From: Lepidodermella squamata
Lineage: Eukaryota > Animalia > Gastrotricha
Direction of reading: 5' to 3'
Length of the DNA stretch: 64,000 nucleotides
Assembly (NCBI GenBank): GCA_047495785.1
Contig: JBLDXI010000009.1
Location: 2,790,001 to 2,854,000, forward strand
Both the position numbers and the translations under genes were made by a program. Shown piece by piece: positions 16,041 through 64,000 of the stretch (its first letter is position 1; each line of letters opens with the position of its first letter). The notes beneath the pieces are model-generated. The model was not told where the DNA came from and made no database searches. It was given only the letters and a program-made list of their open reading frames with translations.

Positions 16041-17836
16041 TTTTAAATATCCCTAGATATTTAGCAACAAAGCGATGTCAGCCATAGCTATCAACATAAA
16101 TGCAAAAGCCAGTGCTATTGTCTATTGTTGAGAACGGCATTCAGGCCGCCGGACTCGGGCTTTCCTAGGGTGGATCTCCTGAATCTGGCCAGAGTGTGGA
16201 CCCTGATAACCGCGCCTGCGATCACCGCTCTTCGGCCTCGGGGTTCGGATATGCCAAAACGCGAACGGGCACGTTTCGGACTACAGCCCCTAACAGTTCA
16301 CTAATATATTAGTGATATTAGTGATTTTACCAACTCTACCAAAAGTAAATGAGTGCCCAAAAGCCTTAGGCTGGGCGTAAATTTCGCAGAGAATTCTCCA
16401 TCTACCTGAAGATTTTTACTAAACACTGATTGAAGCAGCCATGCTATCGAGGGGTGGCAGGTTAACTGCCCGTGAACCAAGGTAATTTCAAGAGTGCTGC
16501 AGAGATGATATATTCTTAGTAGCCTAAATGGGTTGAATCAGGACACGTAACTCTTACCTTGAGCTACGATGTTAAATATTAACCCATTCATAAAATCGTT
16601 ACATAAGCAATTTACAGTGTAGTAAGTCTGCTAGAAAATGCCTATCGGACTGAATTTATACATGAACTATGACTAGCGCATCCAGTTGCATTTTGATGTG
16701 CCTTTTGATACGTCGTATCCTGAGCAATCACAGTTCATCTAATGGAAATCACTCAAAACTAGAGCTGACGCGCCGCTAACGGTAGACGCAGCCAGAAGCC
16801 AAAAAACCTGCTTTCGTGGATTTCCCAAAAAATTGAACTAGGTCACGTGACTGTTATTAATAATTTATTTGATCAACGAATTAAAACAAAACCTTTGTTA
16901 ATTTCTGTTTGAGATAATATATGTGAAAACTAAATAACAGCTAATAATGTGCATCAGGATTCGGGTTTTTTTGAAGGACCGGACCTTGGGCAAAAACCTT
17001 GTTTGTGGTAACTTGTACCCGGTTGCCGGCTGCACGACCCCTCTGATATCTGTAGAGCTGAAAGCTGGAAAACGAGAGGTATCTCGCATTTTTTCTCTTC
17101 AATAGGCATGAATACTAGAGTTTTCGATGGCTGCGTTGAGAGTGAATCTATAATTAGGTCAGCTGACAGCTGACTTACACCAACCGTGGCGTTGAGCTAG
17201 TAGACTGTGTTGTGTCCTCCTGCGCCTTGGTATTATTTAAGATGAAGGATTATTGCTTATTTTTTGAGGAAGAGGCAGGAGTGGTGACCTTTTTTATAAT
17301 TCAGTGATCTAACAACAGCTTATTACAGCTGCTTTTATAGAGACATTTGCCTGCGCTAGAGCTAATAGTAGCTCTCATGAAATGAAATCTGAATGGTGAG
17401 ACTAATCCTGTTGTCGAGAGTACTACTGAGTCATAAGTCATAAGTCCTGTGGGCAGATTCTTATGTCATCTCGTATCGCCGCCTATCAAGGCTTCTAGCT
17501 TCTACATAATTATTGCGCCCAGGTTTCGCTTGACCTTACTTTCTAGTTCGATGAGTATTAGCTTATCAGATTTTGAAATCTAATAGCAACTAGCAATTCG
17601 GATTCGACGTTAGTTGCCTGCTCACGCTATAATTCTAACTTCTATATAGAAATATACATTTCATGCTTCAAATCCAACTTTTATTGTTTTTTTTTTAGAA
17701 ATTTATGGAAGTTATTCTATGAGATGTCGCATCTCAACGAAGACGCGGCATCCTGTAATCTGAAAATGGCCAGTAATAAAAGACAAACTATCAATTGTCA
17801 CAATCAGTCTTGATATCAATCATTCGAATTTCCCTG

Positions 17837-20800
17837 ATGCTGCTAAGGACGTTAAACGTGCCATCATTTAATGTGATTGAAATACCATGCACGTGTTTGT
17901 TAACCCTATTGTTTTTGCTTGTGTTTGCCCCTGTAACTGAACCCTCTTCGCCGTCTCAGAGCATATTTCTCCTCGGCTTTCGAGTTGATTCGCCGGAGGC
18001 TGTGTACAATGATGAAGAAGCAGTATATAACGTACCAAGCAACCGTAAAGTTAAACTTCGTTTGTTCGGCGAGAACTTGGCCGGCGCCGTCCGCCTTTTG
18101 TTCACTAAGCAGAAGTATTCTGAGAACGAGACATGCGATACTATGGATCATACCTCATCGTTCGAATTGGCCGAACGGCGAAATTCAAGCACTACAGCTG
18201 ACGTGATATTTGAAACTGGAACGACTGATGATGTGACTTACTTCATGTGCGTTCGAGATTTCAACGGAGGCTACCATCATCTGGGCGACCAATCGCGAGT
18301 TGTGATTGTTTACAAAGCCGAGCATATTATGCCATTACCCATCCAAGTTCTTCTAGTAACTACCTGTTTGTTGTTATCGTCGATATTCAGCGGTCTAAAT
18401 CTTGGCTTGATGTCTTTGGATGTCGGCGAGTTGAAACTTATCATCAAGTGTGGATCACCCGAGGACAAGCAATACGCTAAAGCGATTCTACCGATTCGAA
18501 AGCGAGGAAACACATTGCTATGCACGTTGCTATTCGGCAATACAATTGTTAACGCGAGCTGTACACTGTTACTGGACGATTTAATTGGGCAAGGGATATT
18601 TGCTCTAATGGGATCTACGGTTGGCATCCTAGTGTTTGGCGAAATCGTTCCCCAATCAATTTGTTCAAGATATGGCCTTCGTGTTGGCTACTACTGCCGT
18701 TTTATAGTTATGTTCTTCATGTTTGCGTTATTCCCTGTCACCTTTGCCATCGGAAAACTTCTTGATTTGATACTGGGTAGAGAAATTCACCAGGTTTACA
18801 GTCGCGATGAACTGAGAGAGATGGTGAAAATGAGTTTTGCAATGGATGATAGCCGATCTTCTTCCCCCACAGCTTTCGCTAATCGAAGCGGGTTGAAGCG
18901 TGAGGAAGTCAACATTGTGACGGGTGCATTGGAAATCACCGAGGCAACTGTGAGCCGAATCATGAAGCAGAAGGACGAAATTTTCATGTTGGACATATCT
19001 GTTGCAATCGACTACGACCTCATTGAGCTGATAACTCGCCATGGATATACTCGAATTCCGATTTATGCAAATGGAGACCGGAACAACATAGTCGGGCTTC
19101 TCTCGACAAAAGATTTGCTTGGTATTGATCCTGAAGATAAACTTCCACTGAATTCTCTTGTTGAGTATTACCCACGCTCGATTTTGCGCGTTCTTGAGAA
19201 CACAACCATTCTGGATATGCTTAATCTATTCAAAACAGGTTTAATATTTCCGGAATCATTATATCTTGTTGATTTATCGTTTTTTTCTATCGCAGCGAAA
19301 GTTCACTTAGCCATTGTCGATAGAATAATCTGTGATGAGGAGCATGATCCTATAAAAGAAATGGTTGGCATCGTAACTTTGGAGGACGTTATCGAATTCA
19401 TTTTACGCGAAGAAATTAACGACGAAGCTGATGGTTCGTTTTTCGTGGTTATTTTATTTATTTTCATGACTGAAAAAATCGCAAGGCGAGAGATATTATA
19501 GCTGCTTTTGGGCTTTGGGCTAAGTAGCACGGAAGTACTCGTGTCAGTAATTGGATTTGCCTTGGCGTTTTTATGTTTTTTTATGTGCACTTTGGGTCGA
19601 TTTTTAAAATATTCGCAGTCCTATGCGAATTGTCTATATTCTCATTCTTTAAACACGCGTTTTGTTTGTATATATACATTTATATAAAATATATACAAGC
19701 ACAGTAGTCGCGGTATTGATTTCTGTTTGGGTCTGGGTTTTATTCATTAATTTGTCGACAAAAAAATGACTGGGGCTTTTTTTGCTGCTGTGAATCCATC
19801 ATCCGGACGATGGCAATTTCCTATGCATGCGGAATGCGTTGAAATACAGCAGTTTTCGGGCACTCGAGGCTCGCCCCATGTGTGTGTATGCGTGTGTGTG
19901 ATTTATTAATTTATCGTTTTCCGCTACAGCGCTAGCTGACCTGGCTGAAAATTTAAAATATAAGGGCTGAAAGGAACATAATTTTACTCGAAACCGCAGC
20001 GCGTATTGCGGATCGATGGTTTTTAATTCTGTTGTTATTATTTTCTCAGATCTAAAGGAGCGTCGCAAGAACGAGGAAATGGCGGATTCTAAAATGCATT
20101 CTCATGTTATGCCTTTCAAACGAGCTGATACAATTCCCCAGCAGTTAAACACGGCTGCTGTGCAGTTTCTCATCGCCAGTAATTTGCGACCAGTGAATGA
20201 AATGAGACAAAAAAAACAACATTATTCATTTTTTATCAGATGTGGAGGCCTTTCGCAAGGAGATTGTTGAAAGAAAAGTGTTGGCTAATTTACTGCGTTT
20301 CCCGGGCATTTTCGTCGTGAAAAAACATAGCGGCAAGCATGGCCACCACGAAAATGCGCTATATTCAGCTGAAAAAGAAGTGCGTGTTTATGTGATATTT
20401 AAATTAAACTAACACGAGGTCAATTTCCATTAACACAGGCTGACTATTTCCTTCTGATCCTGCAAGGAGCCTGTCAGGTTTACATTGGCCGAGAGCGACT
20501 GCCGTTTGAAGCTGGCCCGTTTCACTATTTCGGCTTGGAGGCCCTACTTGGTAAGAAATTCCTCCCTTATTAGTTACCCGTTAGATGTTGAAATATCGTT
20601 GAATGTCTCACCCGATGCCATTTTTAGTAGACCTAGTAGTTGCGTGAATCCTACCATCGCCCCTTGAAAGTTTTTGAGCTGTTTCGTTTTTTGTTTCATT
20701 TTTTTGTTGTTAATGTAAATAACTTGAAAGGGGTCGGTAACGTGCCTGTTGTCGCTCCTTTTGCTGTTCGGCCGTCTGTCGTGTCATTGTCGCCTCGATC

Positions 20801-25141: not shown

Positions 25142-26879
25142 TCAAAATCTCAAATCTTTATTGTTTACCGTTCGCTTTGCACCTATTATTAGTCATAATG
25201 TTTACAAAATTCAGAATGAGTACAAAGGTGGCAAAGGGAGGCTCGAGCGCAAAGAACAAGGCGTCCGGGACTGCATAAAATTAATTACAGCATGATGCAT
25301 ACAACTGTATACATACTTAGATACAGGAGGAATGGTACAAAGATTACATGTTCGGCAGGATAGGTAGGAACTCGAGAATATAATGGCGCACTTTGGTAGC
25401 AAAAATCAATGTAGAGTAAATACTGGTGATATTATTAGGTAGTGAATTCCACAAAGATGTCAGGCGCAAAATAAAGGAACAATGCCGTTGTTTGTAGTTC
25501 CACTGAGGAAAAATTAATTTATTGTTATGACTAGAACGAGTAGTAGAAGTGGACGGGGGATAAATAAATTCATTACGAAGCACAGAAATATGATTATGAA
25601 TGATTTTGTGGGCTATTTGAAGGTCCCTGAACAACCATCTCTGATGAAGTGATTGAATGTTAAATTTTTTCAGCCTTTCCAAGTAACATAAAGGAGCAAA
25701 GGGAGGAACTATCATTCGAGAAGTAACATTTTTGAGACACTTTTCCAAGAGGATTTTATCAGAAGCATTGGTGGGGTTCCAAACAGTTGAACAATAAAGG
25801 AATAAAGGTAAGACATAAGTATTAAAAGCACGCATTAGAACAGAATTATCTCGCGATACAAAGGAGTTCAAGATCAGACCGCACATGCGCCTGGCTTTTT
25901 CGTAGATATAATTACAATGAGAGGAAAATGATAATTTGCTGTCTACGATGACACCAAGGTCTTTAATTTCATATACTGATTCAATAGCGTGGTTCGACAC
26001 GGTATACGGAAAACACGGATTGTTTGAACCTAACCTTAAAACCACACATTTTTTCATGTTTACAGCTAGCTGATGGCTCAGAAAATAAGCTACGATGCAG
26101 TCAATATCAATCTGAACTTGAGAAGGAAGAGAATCAGGCTTCGGGTAAATCTTGACATCATCAGCATAGAGTTTAATTACACAGTGCTTGACAACAGAAG
26201 GCAAATCATTAATAAAAATTACAAATAACAGAGGACCCAGAACACTGCCCTGTGGAACACCGGATGACACATGTGACCAATCAGAAGAAGCGTTATTTAC
26301 ACAAACGCGCTGCTTACGAAGGATGAGAAAATTTTTAATCCAGTCTAGCAGTAATCCTTCAAAGCCATAATTACGTAATTTATCCAACAGTTTGATATGA
26401 GATACTGAGTCGAAAGCTTTTTTTAGATCAAAGTATATACAATCAGTATAATCTCCACGGTCAAGCGTCTTCGACCAGTCATTCACAGACTCCAATAGTT
26501 GTAGTTCAGTATTGCGAACAGGTAAAAAACCGAATTGCTCAGGAGATATTAGATTATTTTTCAGTAAAAATGATAGCATGTTGAATCTAACAACAGATTC
26601 CATTATTTTACATGGGACACTAGTTAGGCTGATAGGTCTATAATTCTCAGCGGAAGAAGAGGATCCAGACCCTTTATAAATAGGAATTACATTAGCAATC
26701 TTCCAAAGGGTAGGCAATTGAGATGTTTCAAAACTAGCAGAGAATATCAGAGAAAGTGGAACAGATAGAGCTTCTGACAAATTTCTAAGGATAGCTGGGT
26801 TGATACAATCTGGACCCATTGAGGTGTTGACATCAATTTTTCTTAGAAAAGATTCAATAATATTTTGAGGAAATTCTAC
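25142..26879 (-). mobile_element. 5'-truncated non-LTR retrotransposon (LINE, CR1/L2-group-like) with uninterrupted reverse transcriptase frame (ORF 25344-26819)
   Basis: RT motifs ENYRPISLTSVPCKIME, QFGF, YFDLKKAFDSVSH, SGVPQGSVLGPLLF, LYADD and KDLGV. No endonuclease domain. The 3' end is AATAAA plus GATTTGAGATTTTGA. Candidate 6-bp TSD ACGTTC at 25136-25141 and 26880-26885. Confidence 0.9.
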
Positions 26880-27760: not shown

Positions 27761-28630
27761 ATGGGGTTGGAGACATTGTTCGAATTGTACAAGGATTCCG
27801 CTAAATCGAGGCTTCATGAAGTGGTGATATGTCTGCACAGCTTTCTTCTGGAACGTAAATTAAAGTCCGTCGGAAAATCTTACGATCCTAATGTTTCCGC
27901 CGCTTCGCTGAAGGGCTCTGAGCTCTTGCCAAATGGATGGAACGCGGACAACAACACAGTGGAATTATATTACATTGAACCTAATTCCAGCAATGTTTTC
28001 AAAGTTCTAGCATTGACCGAAGGAACTTCTTGTCTGCTTCATCTTCTTTCTGCTCAACCGGGTGATGGGAAATCAGCTTTCATCGAATTGGATATCAATG
28101 AATACGTTAATGAAACCAGTCACAAAACTGTAGAGCAAGTTTTCAGAAATGTCGATGCGTTAAAGAAGGTATTATTTCTTTATAAAATGAGTACACCGTT
28201 ACAATATTGCTTTGTACGCCAGGTCGTCGTGGAAAAACTGTTCAATGTTATCATTCCTCAAACTGAGAGCGCACAAAGAGAGGATAATGAGAGAAATGCT
28301 AGAGACTTTGGTCGCCCTTTCGTTCCAGTTGGTGGTGAGGGTCCAAGCCGACAGTTTGACCCGCTTCGAGACTATGGCCGAGCCGATTTAGATCCATTTT
28401 ACGTAGAACCTGGAGGTCTGGGAACATCTCCACCTGGCGGTATGATTTTCGATCCTCTTCGTGCTGTTCGTCCAAGAGCACCCGACCGTTTTTCTGGTTT
28501 GATTCAACCGCTCCCGCGTGGCTCTGTTCCTCCGGGTGCTCGATTTGACCCATTTGGCCCTCCTGGAACTGGAATGCCGGATCCTGACTTGGAGCGCCGA
28601 CCCAACTTTAACGACGATTTTTATAGTTAA
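27761..28630 (+). CDS. PSMF1: Proteasome inhibitor PI31 subunit
   Basis: Motifs MGLETLF, SELLPNGWN, GRADLDPF, GGMIFDPLR and LPRGSVPPGARFDPFGPP; C-terminal HbYX motif (FYS). Probable 54-bp in-frame intron at 28169-28222. Confidence 0.92.
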   Translation: MGLETLFELYKDSAKSRLHEVVICLHSFLLERKLKSVGKSYDPNVSAASLKGSELLPNGWNADNNTVELYYIEPNSSNVFKVLALTEGTSCLLHLLSAQPGDGKSAFIELDINEYVNETSHKTVEQVFRNVDALKKVLFLYKMSTPLQYCFVRQVVVEKLFNVIIPQTESAQREDNERNARDFGRPFVPVGGEGPSRQFDPLRDYGRADLDPFYVEPGGLGTSPPGGMIFDPLRAVRPRAPDRFSGLIQPLPRGSVPPGARFDPFGPPGTGMPDPDLERRPNFNDDFYS

Positions 28631-48400: not shown

Positions 48401-51400
48401 GACTCAATTAATGTATCCTGGACTGACCTGAGTATGTTTTGAATTTTCAGATTTTTTAAAAATATTTTTTACCCTTAAATATTTATTAATTTAGCATTTT
48501 ATTTCTTTTGCAGTGTGTCCCATAAGTTGAGTAAATTTATTATTTTTCAATGTTTTTGCTGACAAATTGCATATTTTTCCAAAATTGAATAATTTCCCAT
48601 CGTTTATCAACGATTTCTCATGGGCAATTAAAATTTTACCGAAGAAAATCCGAAAAACCCGAAATTCGGGAATTTTCGGTATTTTATCTGGTGAGACCGA
48701 TTTCCTCCGGATTTTTCATTCTCGTTAGTAATTTACGATATAAAATTTTTATGCATTGAGAATTCATCCGGACTCGTCGGAAATCGCCCATAAAATTCTG
48801 CTTTCTGATTTCGTTGAATTTTCTTTGATTGATTTATTCTCAGTTTTTTCGTCAGTTTTTTTTATGAATTTGTATATAAATTGAATTTGTATTTCAATTT
48901 CAAGCTGTCGACGTGCTTCGCGGTGCCGTGGATCGATTTGTGGTGGCGCTTCAGCACGAGAAAAAATCCTCCTACCTGCTACCCGAATCCGCTCATTTGT
49001 CCCTTCTCACCATCAAAGAAATACCCGGCAATCAACACAACATAATTTTCCGCGATCTCGTACCCTCAACCGCTTATACTGTCATGCTAACCATGCACAT
49101 GTACGGCGGAGCTTCAAAACGAGCCGCACCCATCCGAGTTGCGACATCGGACGGGACACCTAGTGGCTTGAAACCGCCTACAGTTCGAACAGTGTCCGAA
49201 TCCCAACTACGGCTATTCTGGTTCCCACCCGTCAACTCAAACGGCCAGGTTATACGGTACAACGTCTATGTTAACGACAAAAAGGTCAAAAGTCTGCCGA
49301 CATCAGCCGACGGCTCGCCGATGACCTCGTTCGCGAACGAGGGTGACTACAGCACTGTCGTCTCAGATCTCGAGCCGTACCAGGTTCACGCCATAATTTT
49401 AGAGGCTTGCACGAAATTCGCGTGTGGGAATTCATCGAAAACCCTGGCGACCACCGTCGAATCCGCACCTAAGGACATGTCACCGCCTCGAGTTGTCGCG
49501 CGGGGTTCAAGCTGGTTAACAGTCCGTTTCGGGCCCCCCGACTCGCCGAACGGAATTATTCTTAGGTACGATCTATACCGAAAATCAACAGACCATTGCC
49601 CGCATTACCGCGGATCGGGTCAGTTTGTGACTGAAAAACGGATTCAGAAAAGGTCGCTGGAAGACGCGATTTTGTTAGACTCGTTGGAGCAGTTGCCGGT
49701 TCTAGACACCCAGGCTCAGAAAAAACCGGCATCAGGCGGGTGTGATTACGTTAGCTGCCCGGTCGGTCACCGGCAATGCGGCGGGATTTGCTACGCCTCA
49801 AATAGCTCTTTAACCTGTTGCCGGGGCGAATTGTTCGAAACCAGGCTTAACCACGTCTGCTGCGATTCGAATTACGTACCAGTTCTAGACGGGCCCCTCA
49901 GTGAGAAGGTCTGCTGCGGAGGTAGGTTGCATAAAAAGGTACCAGGGCACGACTGCTGCTTCGGTAATTACGTCGACATCCCATCTGGCGCAACTTGCTG
50001 CTACAACAGCCTACAGCGCAATGTCATCGTTAGTCTCGGCGACAGTTGCTGCGCCAGTCTGCCGTACCGGCCTAACGAATTCGCGCAGGTTTGCTTCGGC
50101 GGCGTCCTCCTTAACCGGCCGGAACAAAAGGCGTGTGGCCGCCGCTTGATCCCGGCCTCGAAAGTTTGTTGCGCCTCTTCGCCGAATTTGAACGCGCAAA
50201 CCGAGAGTGCCGACCCGTTGCCGGACCACAGGTGCTGCGGCGGGAAGTACTACAACACATCTACGGCCAGGTGTTGCTCCACCGGCCGCCGGACCCGGTT
50301 ATTCCCGTTGGATACCGTGAAGCCTGGTATGGAAATGGCGTGTTGTGGCCTTCAGTTGATTCCGGCTGAGTTGTCCTGCTGCAACGGGAAGCCTTATAAT
50401 CGAAAAACTGCGCTATGTGCCGATACTGCCAACCCGACAAGTGATGAGACTACCACAGTTTTTCACAACTGCGGCCGGGGTACGATTTGCCCGATCGGCG
50501 CGTCAGCGATGTGTGACGCGTGTGATTTTCCGACCTCAGAACGCACTTGTTTGATCGAACAGCGGGAGAATCAAGTGTCGGCTGCTTTTGAGGCGGAGAT
50601 GACGAATAGTGGGGGATGGCCGCGGAATTGGAATAGCCCGTTGTTGGCTCCGATGGGTGAGTTGCATGGATCAATGGCGCTTAGCAGTTGGTGCCAGCCT
50701 CGCATTGTTCGCCTCTACTCGAACCAGACTGTTACTACGTTCAACGATACGGACCTGAAGCCTTACACGCGGTACGAGTATTTCGCACAGGTATGTCCTT
50801 AATTTGACGAAAATCCATTTTTTGAAAAAAAATTCGAATTTTGCTAATCATTTTTGAGGTTCAAAAAGCTCTATGAATGGCTATTTTATAGCAGCGTTGA
50901 TTTTTTGTGAGAAATTATTTTTTTAAATGAATTTTTAAAAATTAAAATTGAAAAATGGCGGGTTGGCGTGGTCGGTGTCCTGGCATTGCGGGTGCGAGAA
51001 GTAATTCTTAAACGCGAAGTAACCGAACCACAAGGCCCGCGCATTTCACGCTGGAGTTAGTCTGCTTTTAAGCGGCGTGATGAATCAATAATTGCGTGGT
51101 AAAATTGCGTGATGCAATTCAAGGTTATTGCTATGCAGGCTTCCAATTCTTCACCTCTGGACCACGTCCATTGGGAGACATTAAACATACATTCCTTACT
51201 AAAAATGGTTCATAATAACAATTTTCGTAGCTTTTCTAGAATAATTTCACTCCGTACAACATTTTTTCTTTCTGATTTTTAAATTACCTCGATATTTCAA
51301 AGAGGAGGCTGGTTCACTTTGAGCACCTACATCAAACTAAAAACCATGGTTTTAAAGTTGGATTTTAGGATTTCGCTATTGAATTGCAGAGGATTTTCTA

Positions 51401-54400
51401 ACAAAAAATAAAAAAATGAAAATGAAAAATGCGTGGGTTGGCGTGGCCGGTTTGTCCTGGCATTGGGAACCCTGTGCGTAGGTAAGTTTTGCGAAGTAGC
51501 CGAACCACAAGGCCCGCGCATTTGGGCAATGCGCCAGTCTACTTTTAAGCTGCGCAAAAATCAATTTCTATCGATCGATAAAATGAGCGCCGTAAATGGG
51601 TTGTAATTTCCCTGTATAACATTTGCCTATTTGGTAGGCTGTTATTCAAGTCCCCCGTTATCAGTTGATCAGCATAAGCAGAAAGCTAGTGCCGTTTTAT
51701 CAATTTTATAAACGCTTTATATGAGATAAGGGGCTGCTTCGCCATATCTGTTGAACGGAATCGAATTCAAGGTAGATTTTTGCATGAGAAGTATCGAAAT
51801 AAAAAATGAAAAAATAAAAAGGCATGAGATAGCGCGGCCGGTTTAGTGGTTCAAGCGGCGCATTCCCGGCTGGTCACCCGAAAGGACCTCCTCCGTGAGA
51901 GCAAATGAATTGGTTTGTGAAACGAAGTAACCGTGCCACTAGGCTCATGCCAAATGACCACCGCTCTAATTTCTATATATCATTATTTCAAAAAACGCGC
52001 TCGAAATTGTAATGTCGTGAAAATTTTTAATACTAATTTTTAATTGTGGCAGATTATTCAAGCTGCATACTTTAGCACTAATTTATTAGAAATAAAAAAT
52101 GAAAAAAAAAATAAAAAGCATGGGTTAGCGCGGCCGGTGTGATTTGGTTCAAGCGCGGCGATGATCTGCTGACGTTGCCGACAGGAAGATCCTCCCCTCG
52201 GTGAGTAGCTCTGTTAGAGAGTTTTGTGAAACGAAGTAGCCGTGCCACGAGGCCCATGCCGTTTGCTATGCTGCGTAAATCCTTTATATACCGCGCTTGC
52301 ACACAGCACAACTCAATGCTAGCATAATCAATGACACGCAGCATATGAATGCAAATGAAAAAATTGCTGACAAATGAAAAATGGGCTCTAGGATAAATAA
52401 ATTGTATTTTCTACCTGCCGTCTCAAATTTGAGATTGTGTTGAAAATTAAATTTTTTTTTTCAATTTTTCAATTGATTTCAATTGATTTTCGATTTAATT
52501 TATTTTAATCAATTTTTAATTTTAATTTTTAATTTTTAGGTCTCAAATTCCGTTGGAGCTGTCAATAGTACGATTTTAACTGCATCAACTACCGAAGCCC
52601 CTCCCTCAGGACTTCAACAACCCAGGATCGTATCAAACCCCGATCAACTGAACGTTCTCCGCATCAATTGGGACCCACCCTCGAAACCCAACGGCGCCCC
52701 GATTTTCTACAAATTATACCGAGACGGAATTTTGATTTTCTCCGGCGACACTCGCTCGTTTGTCGACACGACCGATGTCGCCCCCTTCCAGACCTACACC
52801 TACTGGCTGGTCGCGTGTAACCAGGTCGCTTGTGTGACAAGTAGCCGAGTCTCCGCCGCAACCCTAGAATCAGTCCCGGAGGGCTTCAACGCGCCCAAGG
52901 TCGCTAATGTCAATTCGACATGCGTCAATTTGACGTGGCTCCAGCCTGATAAACCAAACGGGTTGATTACGAAATACATTTTAACCCTCCGCGAGAAAAA
53001 TATTCAGCAAAAAGGCGGCTTGCCAATGCGGGACACCAGCGTCCACACAGCCGGGCCTAATGTCCGGTGGCTAATCGCCTGTAACTTGAAACCTTACTTC
53101 AACTACGAGGCGGGTATGGAGGCCTGCACCCAGGTCGGATGCCGCATGAGTGAATGGCAGGCGTTCACCACCGACGCAGCTTTACCGGTCGAAATCCCGG
53201 AACCGAGAGTTCTCGTCGTTAATTTCATGCATATCGACGTTATTTGGCGGCTCCCATTTTCGCCGAATGGGCCTATACTCGAGACGGTTTTATTCCGGAG
53301 ACGGGATGGAGAAATCTTGTTCTCAAAATTAGTCGCCTACGACACGTCAGTCACCCTAAATCCGGCTTCAAAAACGTTGAATTTTTCGGATTTTACCGTA
53401 AAACCTGGGTATAAATATGCTTACATGGTCCAGTACGCTAACCCGGCTGGGAAGGTTAATTCATCCGAGGTTTTATCGTACGGCGTCCCGTTGAAGTCGC
53501 CTGGTATACCAAGCCGGCCGCCTAGTGCGGTCAGCGTTCGAGGACCGAGGGCTATTACCGTGGTACTTCAACAGCCGATGAATTGTTCAATTGACCCGGT
53601 TTCGTTCGATGAGGTCATAGTGTTGATTGAAGCCGAATCTGGGGTTGAACGGTCGCATTTCAACGGTCCCGAGGCGAATTTTGACAACTTATCGCCTTAC
53701 ACTCTGTACGAAGCTCGGATTAAAACTTGTTTCAAGTGAGTTCAAAATTTATTTTTTCATACCGATATTAGTCTGGAATGATAGGTAATGAAAAATGAAA
53801 AAGTAAAAACACGGGTTTGCACGGCCGGTTTGTTAGGGATTTGAACTTTCAAAGCGACAATTTGATTCCAAATGTGTGAATTTCACGAAGTAACCGAACC
53901 ATAAGGCCCGTGCCTTTTCTATGCGCGCTTATATGCCTTATATATGCAGGCGATGCGTGATTCATGTGTGATGCAATATAGCGCAGTACTGATGTTTGCG
54001 CTCGATGAGTCATCATAATTTCTTTTTTTTTGGCAATGTCTAGAATGCGCCTTTTTGCACCATTTACACCTCAAATATATACTGGAATGAGAAAATTAAG
54101 TCATTCGGATTCTGGTTTCTCTTTTATTTAAAATTCAGAATATCTTTTATGGGAACCAATTTGCCAGTTGCGGAACCTAATTTTAGATGAGAAAAAAGTC
54201 GCTTTTCAAATATTCCTACGAAATTGAGGCAAAGTGTAAAGTTCGTAGTGAAGATTGCGCCTTATACAGAATTTTACGCTGAATTTGAAGATAACTTATT
54301 TTAAATTATGCTGACCAATCATGACACCCTTGAAATGTTCGAAAAAGGGTTTTAGGCCCAAAATTCCAAAGTCGTTCCGCTCAAAGTCAGACCCTCTAAC

Positions 54401-57400
54401 ATTTACTCATATATTTATCTCTGTAACCTCAATCACCCGTTTCCAGTCTCATTCATTATGAAATACTGGGCCGATAAGCCAAATTCCTCCAAATTCAGAA
54501 GGACGAGTTTGGAGTTAGACACCCGTGTTAAATTTTGGGCTCTAATCTTGGGTTTGAAATGAGACTAATCATTTCTCAATTTGATAGACTGTTATCGTCA
54601 AGCCTATCGTTATCAGTTGTTTAGCATATGCAGAAAGCTTGAGCCATTTTTTCAATTTTAGAAGCTGCTTATATGAGGTATTATCCTGAATCCATTGAAC
54701 AGATTCGAATTTCAGCTAGATATTTAGGTAAGAAGTATTGAAATAAAAAATGAAAAAATAAAAAGACATGAGTTGGCGCGGCCGGTTTAGTGGTTCAAGC
54801 GGCGTTTTCCCGGCTGGTCACCCGAAAGGACCTCCTCCGTGAGAATAACCAAGAATTGTTTTGTGAAAAGAAGTAACCGTGCCACTAGGCTCATGCCAAA
54901 TTACCACCTCTCTAATTTCTTTATATCATTATTTTATAAAAACACGCTCGCAATTCGAATTTTAACAAGCTAAGGTTCTTATATTTGCATGGCTTGTTTA
55001 TGGAGCTCGATTGATACAGCCTACAGTGGAGCTAGAAAGGAGAAAGTTGAACTAAACACGAACCCTTCTGGCAACCAGATGAATATATTCATGGTCTACG
55101 AGCTATTTTTAGAGCCCGTAAAAATACCCCATTTTACTCTATTTTGATGAAATGAAAAGAAACCTACTCGTTGGCGAAATCGGAACAAAAGCCAACCCGT
55201 GTGGTTCTTTTGGTTTTTCCTCTAATTAACCTCACGATTTGCGATTTTACGTTTTCTAATGAAACTGTCTGAGCAACTTCGCATTTTTCATTTCTCATCT
55301 TGTAATCGGCTTCGATGTAAATAACTCGCATCAAATTCAAATGAGGAAAGAAATCGAAGAAAAGAAAAAGTATTAGGTACCTATTCACGGAGCAAAGAAA
55401 AAATAAAAAATAAAAATAAAAAAAACATGGGTTTGCATGGCCGGTTTGAGTGATTATGAAATGTCAACAAGGTACGTTGGTTTCATGAAATGGTGCATTT
55501 GCGCGAAGTAACCTAACCACGTGGCCCATGCTGCAATCGCTCGCGCTATTGCGCTGAAATACATGCTTTGTCGATCGATTTTCCAATAACGCTCCAATAA
55601 TGTTCAATAAGTTTCTTTGAGTAAATGTTGTTTACGAAACGTAACGCATTTATTCCAACGTTTCGGTTATCACGACGTTTCATAAACAATGTTCAATAAG
55701 ATACCCCATTTTATTCTATTTTGATAGAAAGCTCTTACTCGGTGGCGAAATCGGAACAAAACCGTTTTACCTTCTGAGTTGAGGGACTTTTTATAACAAT
55801 GAAAAATAGGCACTAGGCACTCTAAAATAAAAGGCAGGGTCGAAAAAATAAGACACTTTTGTTTTATTTCGGGTAATATGCCTTTCATTTTCCGTGGTTT
55901 ATACGTGTTTTATTCGGCTCAGATCGTTTGGAATCACCGTTTCAAGAAATATCTTGATCATGAATTCATACTCTTCAAATTGTCCTACAATAAATTTTTA
56001 GAGCCCATAAAACTGCTTAATTTTACTGGATTGGAACTCACGAAAAATTGGAACAAGTGGAATAATTTCCCCCGTTCGGTTCTTTTGATTGGCGCTTTAT
56101 TCAAATTTATGATTTCACGAGTTCCAAAATGATTTATCTTGCGCGTCTTGTAATCTGTTTCTATGTCAATAACTCGCAATATAAAATTCTAATGGTAAAA
56201 ATTAATTTAAGAAGACTAAAAAAATTGAAATTAGAATTGATAAATGCATGCAGAAGATGCTGGGGTTCTATGTCAATTGAGCAAACGAAAATTGAGCAAC
56301 GAAAATAGAGCAAGGGCTTTTGAGCAACGATATTAGAGCAAACGAAATTAGAGCAAAACGACTTCTGAGCAAACGAAATTAGAGCAAAACGACTTTTGAG
56401 CAAAACGAGATTAGAGCAAAACGACACGAGAGCAAATTTAATAATTAATTGCAGCTGTTGTTTATTTTAAATAAAATTTGCTCTCGTGTCGTTTTGCTCT
56501 AATTTCGTTTGCTCAGAAGTCGTTTTGCTCTAATTTCGTTTGCTCTAATATCGTTGCTCAAAAGCCCTTGCTCTATTTTCGTTGCTCAATTTTCGTTTGC
56601 TCAATTGACATAGAACCGATGCTGGCTATCAGAAATAATACCACAATGTTCTAGGAATAAAAAATAAATAAAAAATAATAGAAATAGAAAATAAATAAAA
56701 AATAATAGGAATAAAAAATAAATAAATAAATAAAAATTAAAAACATGGGTTTGCATAGCCGGTTTGTGTTATGAAGATTCAACGTGAAGAGTTGGTTTCA
56801 AGCATTTGTGCGAAGTAACCTAGCCACATGGCCCATGCTACTTCCACTCTCGCTATAGCGCTTATATACACGTTAGGCCGATCGATTTTCCAATAACGCC
56901 CTAATAATGCTCTCATTTGAGGTTTTTTAATTATCTCCTCCTTAATTTTGCAGACCACCGGAGACCAGCTGCTCGTATAGCGAACCAGTTTTCGTCCGAA
57001 CAAAGCCAGCGCCGCCCGAGGGCCCACCTCTACCTACAGTTTTCGCTCAATCAGCCCGGTCTGTCGTCATCACATGGACACCCCCAGCCGAACCAAATGG
57101 CCCAATCGATCGGTACGAAATCTACCGGCGGCGAATCGGCGAGGAAATGTCGATGATCGCCTCGATTCCTGTCACGGTCGAGGCCTTTGAAGACGGCGAT
57201 AAGGACACGCAAAAAGTCGACACGTCATACATCGATAACGACGAAAAGCTTCAAGCGTTCACAACCTACGAGTACCGGGTAGCCGCTGTCACATCAGCAG
57301 GTCGCGGCTTTTCACCCTGGGCTGCGGTTCGAACCTCCCAGGCTAAGCCTTCGGTATTACGGCCGTTGATGGTCAACCAAACCGGACCGTACGGGGTCGA

Positions 57401-60400
57401 ATTTGTCTGGTCGCCGCCTGAGCATACAAACGGACCGTTGATTCACTATAAAATCGAATATCGCCGCCTTAATGCCGACCCTTCGTCCGATGTCGAAGTC
57501 CCAGCGCATACCTTCGTTGTATCGAGTAAACGGCAGTCTGTCCTGATTTCTGGGTTAAAACCGTTTTCGACATATTCCGCGCGTATTATTGCGGAAAATG
57601 CGGTTGGATCGGCTGAAAGTGACTGGATCACCTTTGCGACACCCGAGGCTGCTCCGACCGATTTGCCACCGGTCACGGTCGAGCAGTCACCCACCGGCTC
57701 GGCGGTCACGCTGCGCTGGGACGAGCCGCTGTCACCCAACGGGCGAATCACTCGTTACGCGTTGTATGATATGACGAAAAGTGAATCGTTACTTTGGACT
57801 GGGTCGGGTCGGGTGTTTGAATACCGGCGACTACGCCCGTTCACCACGTATTCGGTCATGTTAGAGGCGTGCACGAATGCGGGATGCTCGAAGACGCAGC
57901 CGCAGACATTCCGAACGGCTGAAGCTCCGCCGGACCTGCTTGACCCGCCTGTTGTCAAGAAGCTGAATGAGCGTAGTGTCCGGCTGAAATGGATGCCTCC
58001 GAAACTACCAAACGGCGAAGTCATCGAATACGAGGTGAGATCAATTTATTTAATACGTATTCTCTCTAATTATGAGAAAATTAAGTAATTCGTTCAATTT
58101 TTGGTACCGTAATGCGATTGCGGACATGGTAACTTTAGACTACTTAGGCTTCGCAGGTACCAAAGATAAATTCTCTGTCTCATCAGCTTTTTCACATAAA
58201 ACTCAAGGTGATTGGAGCTAAATTCAGTTTCAGAAAAACTACCAATAACTGGTCGTTTTGAGAGCGCCTTATTTTCACTTTATAAAGTGTGTTTCCAATG
58301 GAATTCGACATTTTGATTCTTGGCTTTCTCTCCCCGCTGAAATCAAAGAAAAACTAATAATCCGTCGTTGACGTTGTACGGGGTATCTACCCTTATATTG
58401 TAGTTGAAAAATCGGACAACTATATAAATACCCGGCTATATGAATATGCCGCTAAGAAAAAATTGATTTTTCTTGAATGAAAGATGTTGTGTGCAATGAG
58501 CGTCTAAAAATTTTCGCTAAAAGTTAGCCAACTGTTTAAATTGCCAAAAGCTGGATAAACATAGAAAAATTCTCCAAGAAAACCAGGAATTACCTTGCCC
58601 ACCTTTGGTTCAAATTTCAATAGGTTCAAATATGTTTATAGGCTGATTTTCCATCTTCCATTTGCTACAAGTTTCCCCTCGCTATTGTTTTGTTTAGAAT
58701 TTTTTTAGAATTGCTAAAATTTATGAGGGAATGTGAATAAAATTTGAAAAATGAAAAACACGAGTTGGCATGGCCGGTTTTTGAAAGCAGGAGGATTCTT
58801 GATCCCTCACAACTTTGCGCAAGTGCGAAGTAACCTAGCCACAAGGCCCGTGTCTCCCCTCTAACGCTAAAAATGCATTATAAATGGAACTACAAAAGCG
58901 TATTATTGATCCAATATCGACCGAATTTATCTTTCCACTTGTACCTGAACCCTAAAAATCGATTCCTCTGATATTTTAAATTGAAAAAAACCAGAAAAGA
59001 AAAAACTAAATTTCATAAATTTCAATGATTAATCATCTTAGAGGAATCTTAGAAATTCTGTGTGCAAAGGCAATGAGTCATCTACAGAGGATGATTCGTG
59101 TAGTTTCGTCATTTTAATCGATGGAAAACTACCGGGAGGATGAAAATTCGATAATGCGCGTTTCGACCGTCGATTGATAACACGAGCCGAACGGTTAAGT
59201 AGCTTGCATTGACATCATGAACGATGGTCTTGTATGGCTATGCGCTGCAAAACGGCCAGGCTGGTTCGTGTTTTTTATTTTTTTATTTTTTATTACTCGG
59301 CGTTTTTTCTTTTCCAAGTTTATAATACCCCTTTATCACTTGACTGAGGGTTATATTTTTTCATGTTGTGCGCTCTGTGTAATTAGTTGCTGATAAAGGC
59401 CGGTATAGTGTGCATATGCAAATTAACCAGCCGGTTGGTAGTACACACATCACAGATGGCGGTTGCGTGGATTTTACTACTCTAATTTTAAGATCATACT
59501 TCTTGGGATCATTACTTTATTAAGTTTTGCCCCAACGTCAGCCTCATCTGACGACAAACCCAAACCGCGATGACGAGACGTGGTGACTGGCCCTGAGCGC
59601 GAACTTGGCTTCACCTGGTCGGCTGCCTTCACCGGTAGCTGGCCTGGTCAGCCGTTGATGAACGTTCCGGGTTGGTGGCTCTTTAATTAGGGCCACTTCC
59701 GGAGGGGTCAGTCGCTTTCAGAGCGGCTTTTTAAAATAAAAAATGAAAAATTATTTTGAATAGTTCTACATAACTCACTGATGATGTCAACGAAAACATA
59801 ATCGTTAAAATTTGGCGGAACCAGTTAAAATGCTGATGGTTGCCGAAAACGTTAACATCGGGTTTTCTGGGTTTTTGGCTAATTTTCATTTCTTCGATGA
59901 AATCTTGATGAAAAATTATAGAAAAAAAAACTTATGTTGAGAAGGCTGGAATTTGACCTTGGATACTATTTCCATTCAAGTTGTTAATTTTTTTTATAAT
60001 TATAGCTTTTGCGGTTTGAACACCCGTTGGCTAAAGAATCAGATGGCGACATGATGGACGACCTTTTCATGGCTGATATGCGTCGAAAGGCTTTGAGATT
60101 CGCAACAACCACGACGACCAGCACCGTTCGAACCACTGTCGATTTGCCAAAGCAGCGCCGATCTGTAAAAACAGCTGAAGATACGAAAAAGCCCGCCGCT
60201 AAAATGACCTTGGTTCATTTGAACGACAGCGATGCGAAAGTAGTTTTCCGCGTAAAAGCTGACACTTTGGCTGAAAATGGCATGTTTTCATTCATCGACG
60301 ATGATTTGAAGCCATTCACGCGGTTCAAATACCGTTTACGTGCTCGAAACAGCCGTGGCCTGGTTGAAATTGACGGCTTAGATGACTTTGAGACACCCGA

Positions 60401-63400
60401 AGCCGTTCCTACTCGAATTAAACCGCCGCGAGTTTTGGCCGCCGATACAGATGAGCTGCGATTAAGGTGGTCGTTTCCGGTCGAAGCGAATGGTTTACTA
60501 CGATCGATGGCTATTCACAGGCAGCAGTACAACATGGACCATCAGGCTATTAAAGATTCGATCAAGAAAATTTTGATTAAAAGTAAGATTTTGGTTATTT
60601 TTAAGGCGGAATATTTTAAAACAGTTTTTTTTTATACATTTTGAGGTAAAAAAAGCTGTCTACTTCAGCTTATTAATAACTATGATTCATCACTCTTTAT
60701 CGCACACGTTTTTTGTGTAGATTTACCTCTATTTAATCATGCATAAATTCCGCGGGCCCAGTGGCTAGGTTACTTCGCATTCACAGGAAATCAAATCATC
60801 ACTTTGACATTTCACTCTCCAAACCGGCCGCGCAAACCCGCTTTTTTATTTTTATTATTATTTTTTATTTTCATTTTTCATCTATGATATACCTATCTAT
60901 GATATACCTATCTAAACAACCTCTTCTTCTTAAATTTTATTGGATACCATTTTAATCTTATTTTGAAAATTCCAAAGGCTATTTTCTCACAAAATCTTAG
61001 CATGAACCAAAAACAAAAAAGAAGCCCAAACTAGCTTGGGAAACAACAAAAACCAGAATTCTTTCAGTATACATGGCTCCTGAAAAAAATTAAAAGTAAA
61101 AAAAAAATTAAAAAAATTAAATAAAAACACTCACCGGAAGGCCGGTCAACCCGCGTCTCCTCATCTAGTCAACGCGAACCAACTTTGCCATCCGACTCGT
61201 GCCATTACTCAATGGCTTAAACGCGCATTAAGCTGTGTCGGTATTATCGAATTTCCACCGTCACACCTAGTTTTTATCGATCGATCGGGAAGAGAAAATT
61301 CATCGTAGCCGCATCGTGGCTCACATCGAAGTTTTCAACGGTGGGCTACGATGTTGCTACGATGTGTTGTAGCGCGTCGTAGCATTTTGAAAAATCGATA
61401 AGTGACTCAGTGATTGATTTTTTCAAACGTTGTGGATCATGAGGATAGGAATCTGTCGTCGGAATGTCCAGACAGACATGTAAGTCCACGTGTTACACGA
61501 TCCAGGTGATAAGGGAAATAATTTCAGATTCTAGCAGTCTAACTGTAGCATGAATTCAAGAGGGTGAAACGCGAACGGTAGCCTTCTGCTGAATGGATAT
61601 CAAAACACAGATTGCCGGTAGTTGAAGTACACAGAGCCGCACAGAGGACTCGAAACATGATGTTACCTTCCTGGAAGAGTCATTTCGAGAGTATGGGGGC
61701 TCTTCCATGTCAATTCAACCGACGACCAGCCCGTGTTTTCAAACCTGCACAACGGATAGAGCTTTGAAAACGAATGAAGCTTTAGTTTTTGTGATTTTTT
61801 CCTCCGACGCAATGGCGAGGTTAAAAAATTCAAACCTGAAACCCACGCCAAATCTTAGAAACGGTAGTCAAGGAGCTTGTTCTCGCTAACTGTAGCGTTT
61901 CCCGGCGAAAATTTGTTACTGAAGTTACATCTCAATGGTCCCAGTATGCACACATAGTCTCGGCCTGGAATCGTCAATTTTCGCATTTTTTTTAATTCGG
62001 AACCCCCCAAAAGTAGGTATTTTCGGAAGGTCAAACATTCATTCTACTCAATTTTTTCTCCAAATGTTTTGCACCATCGTATTCAGCGTAACAAGTTGTA
62101 ACATGCAACATATGTCGGAATCACGGTGGTTTTCTTCCGTTTCTTGGAATGGAAACGTTCCTCGCCTGATGGAGTGTCCCATCGATTCCATGTTTGGTAC
62201 AAATGCGGCCCCCGGGATAGGCTTTCTAGCAAAACAAACCTCGTCCCACTCGGATTCTCCATCGGTTAGCCCTGGGTTGAAAATAATAGTTTTGGCTGAT
62301 TTTATCAGTTTTTCGAGCCAACTTGGCGCCGAACTCTTATCGCCCGCGTTTCTGTATAATTACTTCCATTTAATCATGCCTATATTGAGCTGGCCCAGTG
62401 GCTAGGTTACTTCGCATTCACACTGAAATTAAATCTTCATTTTGACACAAAAGAAGTCCAAACCACTTTGGGAAATAACAAAAACCAGAATTCTTTCAGT
62501 ATACATGGCTCCTAGAAAAGGAATTAAAAGTAAAAAAAAATTTAAAAAAAAATAAAATAAAAACACTCACCGGGATGCCGGTCAACCCGCACCTCCTCGT
62601 TCCGACTCAATGCGGACCAACATTGCCATCCGGCTCGTGCCATTACTCTATGCCTTAAACGCGCATTAAGCTGTGTCGGTATTATCGAATTTCCACCGTC
62701 ACACGTAGTTTTTTTCGATCGATCGCGAAGGTGAAAACCTATGAATAATTCAGTCATTTTATTTACTGTCCTTCACAGGTTGCCTCTTGGGTAACGAAAA
62801 AATAGAAAATTAAGAGAAAATAAGGACCGAGGCAAAAATCCAAAGAAATCTATTCAAAATACCGATAATTACCGAACCATTTCAATCGGTTTTATCCGGT
62901 TTTATTCTGAAAAATTGAAAATTGGTTTCTGAGGAGCCTTAAATTAAAGTTTGCTAACTTATGAAAATTAAAATTTTCCAAGCAAATTTTCACATTTTTA
63001 AAATAAATTGTCTGTCATTTTTTTTCAGATTTTCACACGCATGATTTTGTCGATTCCGATGTGAAGCCCGATACCGAGTACGCATACGCCATTGAAGCTT
63101 GCACCACAGTCGGCTGCAACATGAGCAGGTGGCGCCATGTAAAGACCCTCGCCCCGCCCCCGGACATGTACTCAGCCCCCTCTGTTTCTAACGTCAACTC
63201 AACCTCAGCAACAATCCACTGGGTTAAACCAGTTTCGAACCGGGCTACAACCTCTCTGGGCAGTGGGCATTTCCTGAGAAGCGCGGCGACGGGTGACGTG
63301 ATCGGTTATCGCATCGCTGTGAATGGGACGGAATATCCGAAATTAATACCGGCCGAAGAGACATTTTACGTACTGAACGAACTAAGACCGTTCCATTTCT

Positions 63401-64000
63401 ACTCAGTCGCTATAGCGGCTTGCGTGAATAAACCGTCATGGGACTCGAACCGCGACGACCCGGACGAAGATCTCGAGCAATTTTTCAAGGAAAATTTCGA
63501 CCAATCCGGCAATCACACTGTTGTTCTATCGAAAGTTCAAGAAATCGTCTCGAGTCGAAGCGGGGCTCTATGCGGGGCCTACTCCCGGCCGGCTACTATT
63601 CAAACGGAAGAGGCCCTACCGAAAAATCTAGCCCCGCCCAGGCCTGTTGCGATCAGTTCGTCCGCGATTGATATTCAATGGCGGGAGCCTGAGGAAACGA
63701 ACGGTTTCATCCTAGAGTACGTTCTCTACCGGAATAACTCGGCGATTTCCTACTGCGATTCCTGCTTCAGTTACATCGATTACGATTTGGAGCCTGCTAC
63801 GGCGTATTCTTACCATCTAACCGCGAGAAATAGCATTGGAACAATTACATCGAGTGAGGCGAATGTGACTACGTTTTTCTCATCGCCGGACGGAATGCCG
63901 CCGCCTAAGGTTAAATCGCTAAGCCCCACCACGGTTCTGGCTACGTGGGAGAAGCCGGTAAAACCGAATGGGGATATCAAAAATTACACGATTTACCTAA
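36416..64000 (+). CDS. USH2A: Usherin orthologue (LamG-like, laminin N-terminal, laminin-EGF array, FN3 repeats, two LamG, Cys-rich region, more FN3); runs beyond window end
   Basis: N-terminus (GSFPNLFNVA..STC..FFCRS..FCDASCPTRSS) and domain order match usherin. About 18 exons in the window, including 38493-39254, 41156-43151, 43686-45659, 46191-48432, 48905-50790, 52541-53736, 56954-58034, 60006-60582 and 63029-64000. Confidence 0.93.
40801..41010 (+). repeat. Diverged dispersed intronic repeat (related copies at ~48516-48722 +, ~62835-62965 -, partial ~59850-59936 -)
   Basis: Shared TGTCCCATAAGT... and ...GG(T/G)AATTTTCGGTATT..GATTTTT(T)CATTC blocks seen by eye. Confidence 0.6.
50951..51042 (-). 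ncRNA. Vault-RNA-like Pol III small RNA, copy 1
   Basis: Minus strand GCGCGGGCCTTGTGGTTCGGTTACTTCG..variable..ACACCGACCACGCCAACCCGCCA TTTTT; CTTAAAAG near -30. Confidence 0.7.
51425..51519 (-). ncRNA. Vault-RNA-like Pol III small RNA, copy 2
   Basis: GCGCGGGCCTTGTGGTTCGGCTACTTCG..CAAACCGGCCACGCCAACCCACGCA TTTTT; CTTAAAAG near -30. Confidence 0.72.
51816..51951 (-). ncRNA. Vault-RNA-like Pol III small RNA, copy 3
   Basis: GGCATGAGCCTAGTGGCACGGTTACTTCG..TAAACCGGCCGCGCTATCTCATGCC TTTTT; ATATATAG near -30. Confidence 0.75.
52113..52260 (-). ncRNA. Vault-RNA-like Pol III small RNA, copy 4 (longest)
   Basis: GGCATGGGCCTCGTGGCACGGCTACTTCG..ACACCGGCCGCGCTAACCCATGC TTTTT; TATATAAAG near -30. Confidence 0.75.
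53805..53914 (-). ncRNA. Vault-RNA-like Pol III small RNA, copy 5
   Basis: GGCACGGGCCTTATGGTTCGGTTACTTCG..CAAACCGGCCGTGCAAACCCGTG TTTTT; TATATAAG near -30. Confidence 0.75.
54760..54897 (-). ncRNA. Vault-RNA-like Pol III small RNA, copy 6 (paralogue of copy 3; internal T4, possibly defective)
   Basis: GGCATGAGCCTAGTGGCACGGTTACTTCTTTTCAC..TAAACCGGCCGCGCCAACTCATGTC TTTTT; TATAAAG near -30. Confidence 0.65.
55421..55531 (-). ncRNA. Vault-RNA-like Pol III small RNA, copy 7
   Basis: GCATGGGCCACGTGGTTAGGTTACTTCG..CAAACCGGCCATGCAAACCCATG TTTTTTTT. Confidence 0.72.
56264..56617. mobile_element. Foldback-type MITE (long TIRs built of ~14-15-bp GAGCAAA(A)CGA subrepeats), 8-bp TSD
   Basis: Ends GGTTCTATGTCAATTGAGC / GCTCAATTGACATAGAACC. 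Near-perfect arms of ~145-175 bp around a short AT spacer. TSD GATGCTGG at 56256-56263 and 56618-56625. Confidence 0.92.
56739..56838 (-). ncRNA. Vault-RNA-like Pol III small RNA, copy 8
   Basis: GCATGGGCCATGTGGCTAGGTTACTTCG..CAAACCGGCTATGCAAACCCATG TTTTT; TATATAAG near -30. Confidence 0.75.
58754..58854 (-). ncRNA. Vault-RNA-like Pol III small RNA, copy 9
   Basis: GACACGGGCCTTGTGGCTAGGTTACTTCG..AAAACCGGCCATGCCAACTCGTG TTTTT; TTTATAA near -30. Confidence 0.73.
59180..59276 (+). ncRNA. Divergent member of the same small-RNA family, copy 10
   Basis: ACACGAGCCGAACGGTTAAGTAGCTTGCA..TGCAAAACGGCCAGGCTGGTTCGTG TTTTTT. Same spacing and closing stem as the other copies; core motif altered. Confidence 0.6.
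59490..59727 (+). ncRNA. U3: U3 small nucleolar RNA
   Basis: All U3 boxes in order: A'/A AAGATCATACTT..GGGATCAT, C' GATGACGAG, B CTGAGCGCGAA, C TTGATGA(ACG) and D (variant CAGA) + GCGG. Stems CCGC/GCGG and TGACTGGCCCT/AGGGGTCAGTCG. Length about 238 nt. Confidence 0.88.
60750..60847 (+). ncRNA. Vault-RNA-like Pol III small RNA, copy 11
   Basis: GCGGGCCCAGTGGCTAGGTTACTTCG..CCAAACCGGCCGCGCAAACCCGC TTTTTT; upstream TATA less clear. Confidence 0.72.
61123..61203 (-). ncRNA. Divergent short member of the same family, copy 12
   Basis: GGCACGAGTCGGATGGCAAAGTTGGTTCGCGT..ACGCGGGTTGACCGGCCTTCCGGTGAGTG TTTTT. Confidence 0.55.
62387..62447 (+). pseudogene. 3'-truncated copy 13 of the small-RNA family (paralogue of copy 11)
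   Basis: GGCCCAGTGGCTAGGTTACTTCGCATTCAC is retained with a copy-11-like upstream flank. The 3' arm and terminator are deleted. Confidence 0.7.
62559..62641 (-). ncRNA. Divergent short member of the same family, copy 14 (paralogue of copy 12)
   Basis: GGCACGAGCCGGATGGCAATGTTGGTCCGCAT..GTGCGGGTTGACCGGCATCCCGGTGAGTG TTTTT. Confidence 0.55.

Follow-up and report, generated by a model that had tools for sequence, protein, structure and literature searches.

Within the 64,000-nucleotide (nt) stretch of Lepidodermella squamata contig JBLDXI010000009.1 analysed here (the window), positions 50951-60847 carry 11 full copies of a 92-147-nt unit (length including the terminator T-run), with nine copies (c1-c9) on the minus strand and two (c10 and c11) on the plus strand. 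The copies very probably represent a family of structured RNA polymerase III (Pol III) RNAs maintained by selection on the pairing of their two ends, where Pol III transcription and the RNA ends are predicted from the sequence signals. The RNA is probably a divergent vault RNA of the host invertebrate, to judge from how it is built, from its sequence and from the type of its promoter; it may be linked to the vault particle.

A covariance model (R1) was built from the copies and used to scan the whole 64 kb. Beyond the 11 full copies it identifies only a truncated copy (c12p) and two weak, derived, rod-shaped relatives (d1 and d2), i.e. a cluster of 14 elements within 12 kb (11 full, 1 truncated and 2 derived). 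The elements are as follows:

c1, 50951..51042, minus strand: 92 nt including the T-run; closing stem GCGGG/CCCGC; 73.5 bits to R1; Rfam Vault 25.3 bits; TTAAAAG at -29.
c2, 51425..51519, minus strand: closing stem GCGCGGG/CCCACGC with one C·A mismatch; TTAAAAG at -29.
c3, 51816..51950, minus strand: long G+C-rich centre; closing stem GCAUGAG/CUCAUGC; Rfam Vault 29.7 bits, expectation value (E) 0.0036; TATATA at -29.
c4, 52113..52259, minus strand: the longest copy, 147 nt; closing stem GCAUGGG/CCCAUGC; fold z -3.1; Rfam Vault 24 bits; TATATAAA at -31.
c5, 53805..53913, minus strand: closing stem CACGGG/CCCGUG; an inner pair is A-U where the others have G-C; 101 bits to R1; Rfam Vault 29.8 bits, full length.
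c6, 54760..54896, minus strand: close paralogue of c3; closing stem CAUGAG/CUCAUG; Rfam Vault 24.5 bits.
c7, 55421..55531, minus strand: closing stem CAUGGG/CCCAUG; central hairpin common to c5, c8 and c11.
c8, 56739..56838, minus strand: paralogue of c7, with a similar upstream flank as well (repeat family D11); closing stem CAUGGG/CCCAUG; TATATA at -30.
c9, 58754..58853, minus strand: closing stem CACGGG/CUCGUG with one G·U pair.
c10, 59180..59275, plus strand: divergent, with an altered A-box region and a closing stem extended to 10 bp; stem CACGAG/UUCGUG with one G·U pair; no clear TATA; 53.4 bits to R1.
c11, 60750..60847, plus strand: closing stem GCGGG/CCCGC; 90.2 bits to R1.
c12p, 62387..62464, plus strand: probable pseudogene, truncated by a deletion that took the 3' arm and terminator, and mutated in the 5' arm; 18.2 bits to R1, over model positions 19-90 only.
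d1, 61123..61204, minus strand: rod-shaped derived relative with its own T5 run; 12.7 bits to R1; minimum free energy -33.9, z -3.4.
d2, 62559..62642, minus strand: paralogue of d1 with its own T-run; z -3.0.

Pairing of the RNA ends

The structure was derived from a structure-independent alignment (A1) made with plain MAFFT and folded by RNAalifold. The consensus consists of a 7-bp closing stem (columns 1-7 with 136-142) and two segments of inner helix, formed by columns 12-16 and 126-130 and by columns 19-21 and 122-124, with a conserved internal loop between the stem and the helices. Folding of single sequences yields the identical panhandle in 11/11 copies. The unpaired loop positions C8 and C9 on the 5' side and G131 and C132 on the 3' side are invariant in 11/11 copies, unlike the central domains, which cannot be aligned across copies and fall into four groups, namely: c1/c2, with short centres; c3/c4/c6, with long, G+C-rich ones; c5/c7/c8/c11, which share a hairpin that itself shows an A-U/C-G switch; and c9, with a hairpin of its own.

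These results agree with most of what an earlier, sequence-only reading of this DNA had claimed. It had described inner pairings retained around fixed unpaired positions, and both are recovered here. The closing-stem variants it had reported are all present on the RNA strand (one shared by c4, c7 and c8, one by c3 and c6, one by c1 and c11, and one each in c5, c9 and c10). The ten stems in its list of copies stand as given; the list omitted c2, whose C·A mismatch would read G·U on the opposite strand.

In A1, 93.3% of the 165 cells are paired, compared with 30-48% in controls with slid partners, and 13 cells are changed on both sides vs. 5.6±2.2 in column shuffles (0/500). Such both-side changes occur at five pairs, three in the closing stem and two in the inner helix. 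Of the closing-stem pairs, 3/140 is A-U in 8 copies and G-C in 3; pair 4/139 is C-G in 5 copies, U-A in 5 and C·A in 1; and pair 6/137 is G-C in 7 copies, A-U in 3 and G·U in 1. The inner helix shows the series G-C/G·U/A-U and C-G/U·G/U-A, with Watson-Crick switches at two of its pairs. Selection appears to keep the pairing of the stems and not their sequence, and both arms therefore change together.

In place of R-scape, we used a simulation of our own as the null, in which the copy tree was kept and the parsimony changes of each column were re-placed on random branches, 1000 times per tree. Two copy trees were employed, based on all reliably aligned columns or on the unpaired columns only. 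The compensatory changes noticed in the sequence-only reading persist once the copy phylogeny is modelled in this way: the covariation score (0.364 vs. 0.22-0.23 ± 0.035; 0/1000) and the percent paired (93.3 vs. 81-84; 0/1000) both lie above all 1000 simulations, and the 13 cells changed on both sides compare with 4.2-5.8 under the null (1-10/1000). On either tree, the closing-stem pairs 3/140, 4/139 and 6/137 each undergo at least two type switches, with both columns changing equally often. All four state combinations occur at pairs 4/139 and 6/137, which therefore indicates either repeated switching of one pair or sequence exchange between copies.

The strand that ends in oligo-T has 19 G·U cells vs. 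5 A·C cells, or 17:3 if the divergent c10 is left out, and the opposite strand has the reverse. The claim that the G-U wobbles work on the oligo-T strand thus holds, with exceptions. In c12p, which has lost the partner arm, the sequence of the 5' arm has changed too. Taken together, the Watson-Crick switches, the tree-keeping null, the wobble asymmetry, the fate of c12p and the TATA-like and T-run signals (see below) favour a folded single-stranded RNA under selection, and not a decaying inverted repeat, as had been proposed from the letters.

Some observations weaken the case for selection on pairing. Doubly changed pairs number 5, vs. 2.8-3.5 under the tree-keeping null; this count is reached in 87-207/1000 runs and is not significant alone. 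All 11 sequences are paralogous, and their tree, obtained from only 52 columns, is weakly resolved. Gene conversion between copies could inflate the count of independent compensatory events. Finally, the minimum free energies give no preference for the RNA strand over its complement.

Promoter-like and terminator signals

In 8/11 copies, the start of a TATA-like motif lies at -29 to -31, compared with 3.5% of random intron positions. It should be noted that the nominal P value is too small, given the common ancestry of the copies and a motif set that was chosen after viewing the data. The 3' arm is followed at once by a T5-T8 run in all 11 copies, often with a second T-run next to it, and column 1 is a purine in 10/11 copies. 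An internal A box is present in the 5' helix region, where the cmscan alignment sets GGUUCGGUUACUUCG on the consensus AGcGGUUACuUCg with 11 consecutive identities. Neither a cyclic AMP response element (CRE)-like site nor a proximal sequence element (PSE) was identified.

Based on these signals, each copy would be an independently transcribed Pol III gene. The TATA-like box about 30 nt upstream and the internal A-box-like element GUGGnnnGGUUACUUCG would set the start at the purine, and the run of at least five T right after the 3' arm would terminate the transcript. The ends of the resulting 85-140-nt RNA are predicted to pair as a panhandle that starts with a closing stem of 5-7 bp, continues with a conserved, asymmetric loop (5' CC.., 3' GC.AA) and is completed by a roughly 10-bp second helix interrupted by a single bulge. 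The panhandle would bear a central domain whose length and sequence vary from paralogue to paralogue.

An ATCGAT(CG) motif lies 48-73 nt upstream of c2, c7, c8, c10, d1 and d2, and 13 of the window's 35 ATCGAT sites fall within the 11.8-kb cluster. The motif may be an upstream promoter element, or it may reflect mere shared ancestry of the flanks.

Metagenome contigs were scanned with the pattern of the 5' region. Among the 80 loci returned, R1 shows 79 to be chance matches and only one, L075 (JAAUXV010144917.1, 174-2123), to be real. On L075, a contig of eukaryotic origin with no recognisable coding sequence, 2 kb of DNA hold five related genes, distributed over both strands; the search pattern is absent from four of these. 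The genes have the same GGCC..GUGGC..GGUUACUUCG 5' region as the window copies, together with T-runs; canonical B boxes occur in two of them (GGTTCGAATCC, GGTTCGAACCC), and tRNA-like A boxes in two (TAGCTCAGGTG / TGGCTCAGGTG). Upon addition of three L075 genes to the alignment, 10/15 pairs show both-side changes and 92.4% of the cells are paired, in an alignment that was fitted to the structure and leans towards it. By their predicted promoters, the L075 genes bridge the gap between the standard type-2 layout and the window copies with their decayed B boxes. A separate GGTTCGAACCC site is also present between two of the genes (1883-1893).

Vault identity and alternative readings

In other animals, vault RNA binds TEP1 and is carried in vault particles, and it also occurs as a free protein-binding RNA. 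When the 12-kb cluster was searched against Rfam (4227 families), Vault (RF00006) was the only family matched by the copies. Five copies (c1, c3, c4, c5 and c6) match the Vault model over its full length (1-99) with 24-29.8 bits and E 0.0035-0.15, and c5 searched alone gives E 8.7e-05. The 11-nt stretch CGGUUACUUCG is identical to the Vault family consensus, and in the alignment closing stem, internal loop, A-box helix and oligo-U tail all fall in register. The copies resemble Vault RNA (RF00006; the vtRNA of vertebrates, sea urchin and other deuterostomes) in their size (85-147 nt), paired ends, internal loop and second helix holding the A box. They further resemble it in the variable centre among paralogues, the composite Pol III promoter (TATA plus internal elements), the oligo-T end and the clustering of paralogues.

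In vault RNA genes it is chiefly boxes A and B that are conserved, and upstream elements of the TATA type make the promoters composite; in the RNA, the 5' and 3' regions pair in all species, and the central domain varies strongly in length and sequence (PMC7058938). As far as the predicted genes go, three of these four features are found in the window, and the conservation of boxes A and B is found in part, the B box being degenerate. Vault RNAs are known from deuterostomes and two lophotrochozoan lineages and elude homology search in other invertebrates (PMC2770079). They are barely catalogued outside deuterostomes because their centres diverge too fast for homology searches, and experimental validation exists in only a handful of species (PMC7058938, PMC2770079).

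Several points count against the vault assignment, most of which speak at the same time for a lineage-specific Pol III RNA family that is structured and selected and is not vault (e.g. a Y-RNA/stem-bulge RNA (sbRNA)-like or a new panhandle RNA). Its likeness to Vault would then stem from what many Pol III RNAs have in common, namely a terminal stem, oligo-U at the end and an A box like that of tRNAs. All the Vault scores fall below the curated gathering cut-off of 34 bits, and 6/11 copies have no Vault match at all. The L075 relatives have none either in Rfam (E up to 1). Most window copies have either a degenerate B box (consensus GGTTCGANNCC) or none, unlike the L075 relatives with their canonical ones: the best B-box-like site is AGTTCAAATCC in c5 (9/11), c3/c4/c6 have GCTTGAACC, and c1/c2 have none. 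The 14 elements in 12 kb differ from the 1-4 vault RNA genes of vertebrates (PMC7058938), and c10, d1 and d2 form a rod-shaped subfamily with a remodelled core. Two further points concern the vault assignment itself: no major vault protein gene came up in an analysis in which vault protein genes were not searched for, and the location of the cluster, within introns of an usherin-like gene and mostly antisense to it, differs from the syntenic loci of vertebrates. Set against the lineage-specific family are the fact that Vault is the sole Rfam match, at full length and with an E of 0.0035 that is corrected for all families; the 11-nt identity to the Vault consensus within the same loop and helix layout; and the lack of any Y RNA match at E up to 10. 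On balance, we regard the lineage-specific family as unlikely, with a minor chance of being correct.

Y RNAs and the sbRNAs of nematodes and insects are likewise small Pol III RNAs, often clustered, whose two ends form a terminal stem; they also have an internal loop or bulge, a variable loop domain and an oligo-U tail. They were rejected as candidates, as positions 50000-62000 yield no match to Rfam Y_RNA (RF00019) at E up to 10 and the closing stem and loop sequences differ. In particular, the closing stem of the c-type genes does not contain the Ro-binding GGUCCGA/UUGAC helix with its bulged C. A faint likeness is limited to d2, which has a UGGUCCG...GUUGACC pairing deep inside its longer rod. 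Two viral Pol III panhandle RNAs, the adenovirus VA RNA and the Epstein-Barr virus (EBV) EBER, also resemble the copies in having paired termini, an oligo-U end and a Pol III promoter that is composite or internal. The copies, however, are cellular, lie within introns of an animal gene and have no sequence match to those families.

A more doubtful reading is that a vault-like Pol III RNA has expanded and diversified into a multigene family (at least 14 elements here) that is TATA-driven, has largely given up the B box and has spun off the rod-shaped subfamily, and whose paralogues would have distinct partners or serve as small-RNA precursors independent of vault particles. If true, a new functional class would be growing out of vault RNA. 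The cluster is not a new kind of system.

It is highly improbable that the copies are mobile elements, namely a tRNA-derived short interspersed nuclear element (SINE) or a miniature inverted-repeat transposable element (MITE) with short terminal inverted repeats, whose complementary ends would be a feature of the DNA. The unit is indeed multi-copy, with short inverted termini and A/T-rich flanks, and a reverse-transcriptase open reading frame (ORF) lies elsewhere in the window. Transposon ends, however, are kept by sequence and not by pairing, whereas the termini here differ among copies yet covary and remain complementary, with the 19:5 asymmetry of G·U and A·C. Furthermore, ARAGORN finds no tRNA-like head, there is no A-tail, all the copies in the 64-kb window lie inside 12 kb, and the units have a TATA box at a fixed upstream distance and a T-run at their end. 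Upstream flanks are common to the paralogue pairs c1/c2, c3/c6 and c7/c8 (repeat families D9, D11, D12 and D15); such shared promoter flanks mean that local DNA duplication, and not retroposition, enlarged the family. Both SINE and MITE were rejected on these grounds.

Least probable of all is that the copies are decaying, functionless duplicates of an old inverted repeat whose compensation is due to chance and shared ancestry: the paralogy of the sequences, their weakly resolved tree and the non-significant number of doubly changed pairs would allow it, but the covariation score and percent paired exceed 1000/1000 tree-keeping simulations, the loop bases are invariant while the centres are unalignable, c12p lost the sequence of its 5' arm along with its 3' arm, and the same fold is found in related genes of a different organism (L075).

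To return to the vault reading, the 11 intact, covarying paralogues and the L075 cluster with its canonical A and B boxes constitute a seed alignment for an invertebrate vault-like covariance model. The curated Rfam threshold misses such genes. The paralogue series also lets one ask which parts of the RNA matter, as the stems and the loop are fixed and the centre is free.

Host gene, duplications and neighbouring features

The window is eukaryotic. The RNA copies are located between exons, in four introns of an usherin-like gene; a host exon compared with a protein atlas returns generic FN3 clusters only. The host gene and the other features of the window are listed below:

Host gene, 48913..64000, plus strand: exons with laminin-EGF, laminin-G and many FN3 domains by Pfam and translation (usherin-like architecture).
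Four host introns containing the RNA genes: about 50803-52600, 53760-56990, 58090-60000 and 60650-63026.
U3 small nucleolar RNA (snoRNA) gene, 59490-59727, plus strand: Rfam 102.7 bits; in the same intron as c9 and c10.
Reverse-transcriptase ORF (RVT_1), 25344-26819, minus strand.
Sec1-family protein, 14059-15792, minus strand: a single ORF of 577 amino acids.
CNNM/CBS protein, 17795-19501, plus strand.
PI31 proteasome regulator, 27761-28630, plus strand.

Duplications within the cluster extend beyond the RNA genes. c3 and c6 are a segmental duplication that includes their flanks (repeat families D8, D9 and D15). The block at 60750-61250, in which a d-type gene lies in antisense orientation behind a c-type gene, is duplicated at 62387-62700, where a deletion removed the 3' arm and terminator of c12p. 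The d-type genes d1 and d2 are about 80 nt long, fold as rods, are collinear with c10 at both ends and have no Rfam match. Between the two, the inner helix shows a compensatory change from G-C to A-U; it also contains four consecutive G·U/U·G pairs.

A large foldback is present at about 56265-56615. It consists of two facing arms of about 170 nt, made of tandem units of about 16 nt (GAGCAAAACGA..TTA-like), around an A/T-rich centre, and its matches to microRNA (miRNA) hairpin models are weak and sub-threshold. Finally, the octamer ATGCAAAT occurs about 78 nt upstream of the U3 snoRNA gene and resembles the distal element of small nuclear RNA (snRNA)-type promoters.

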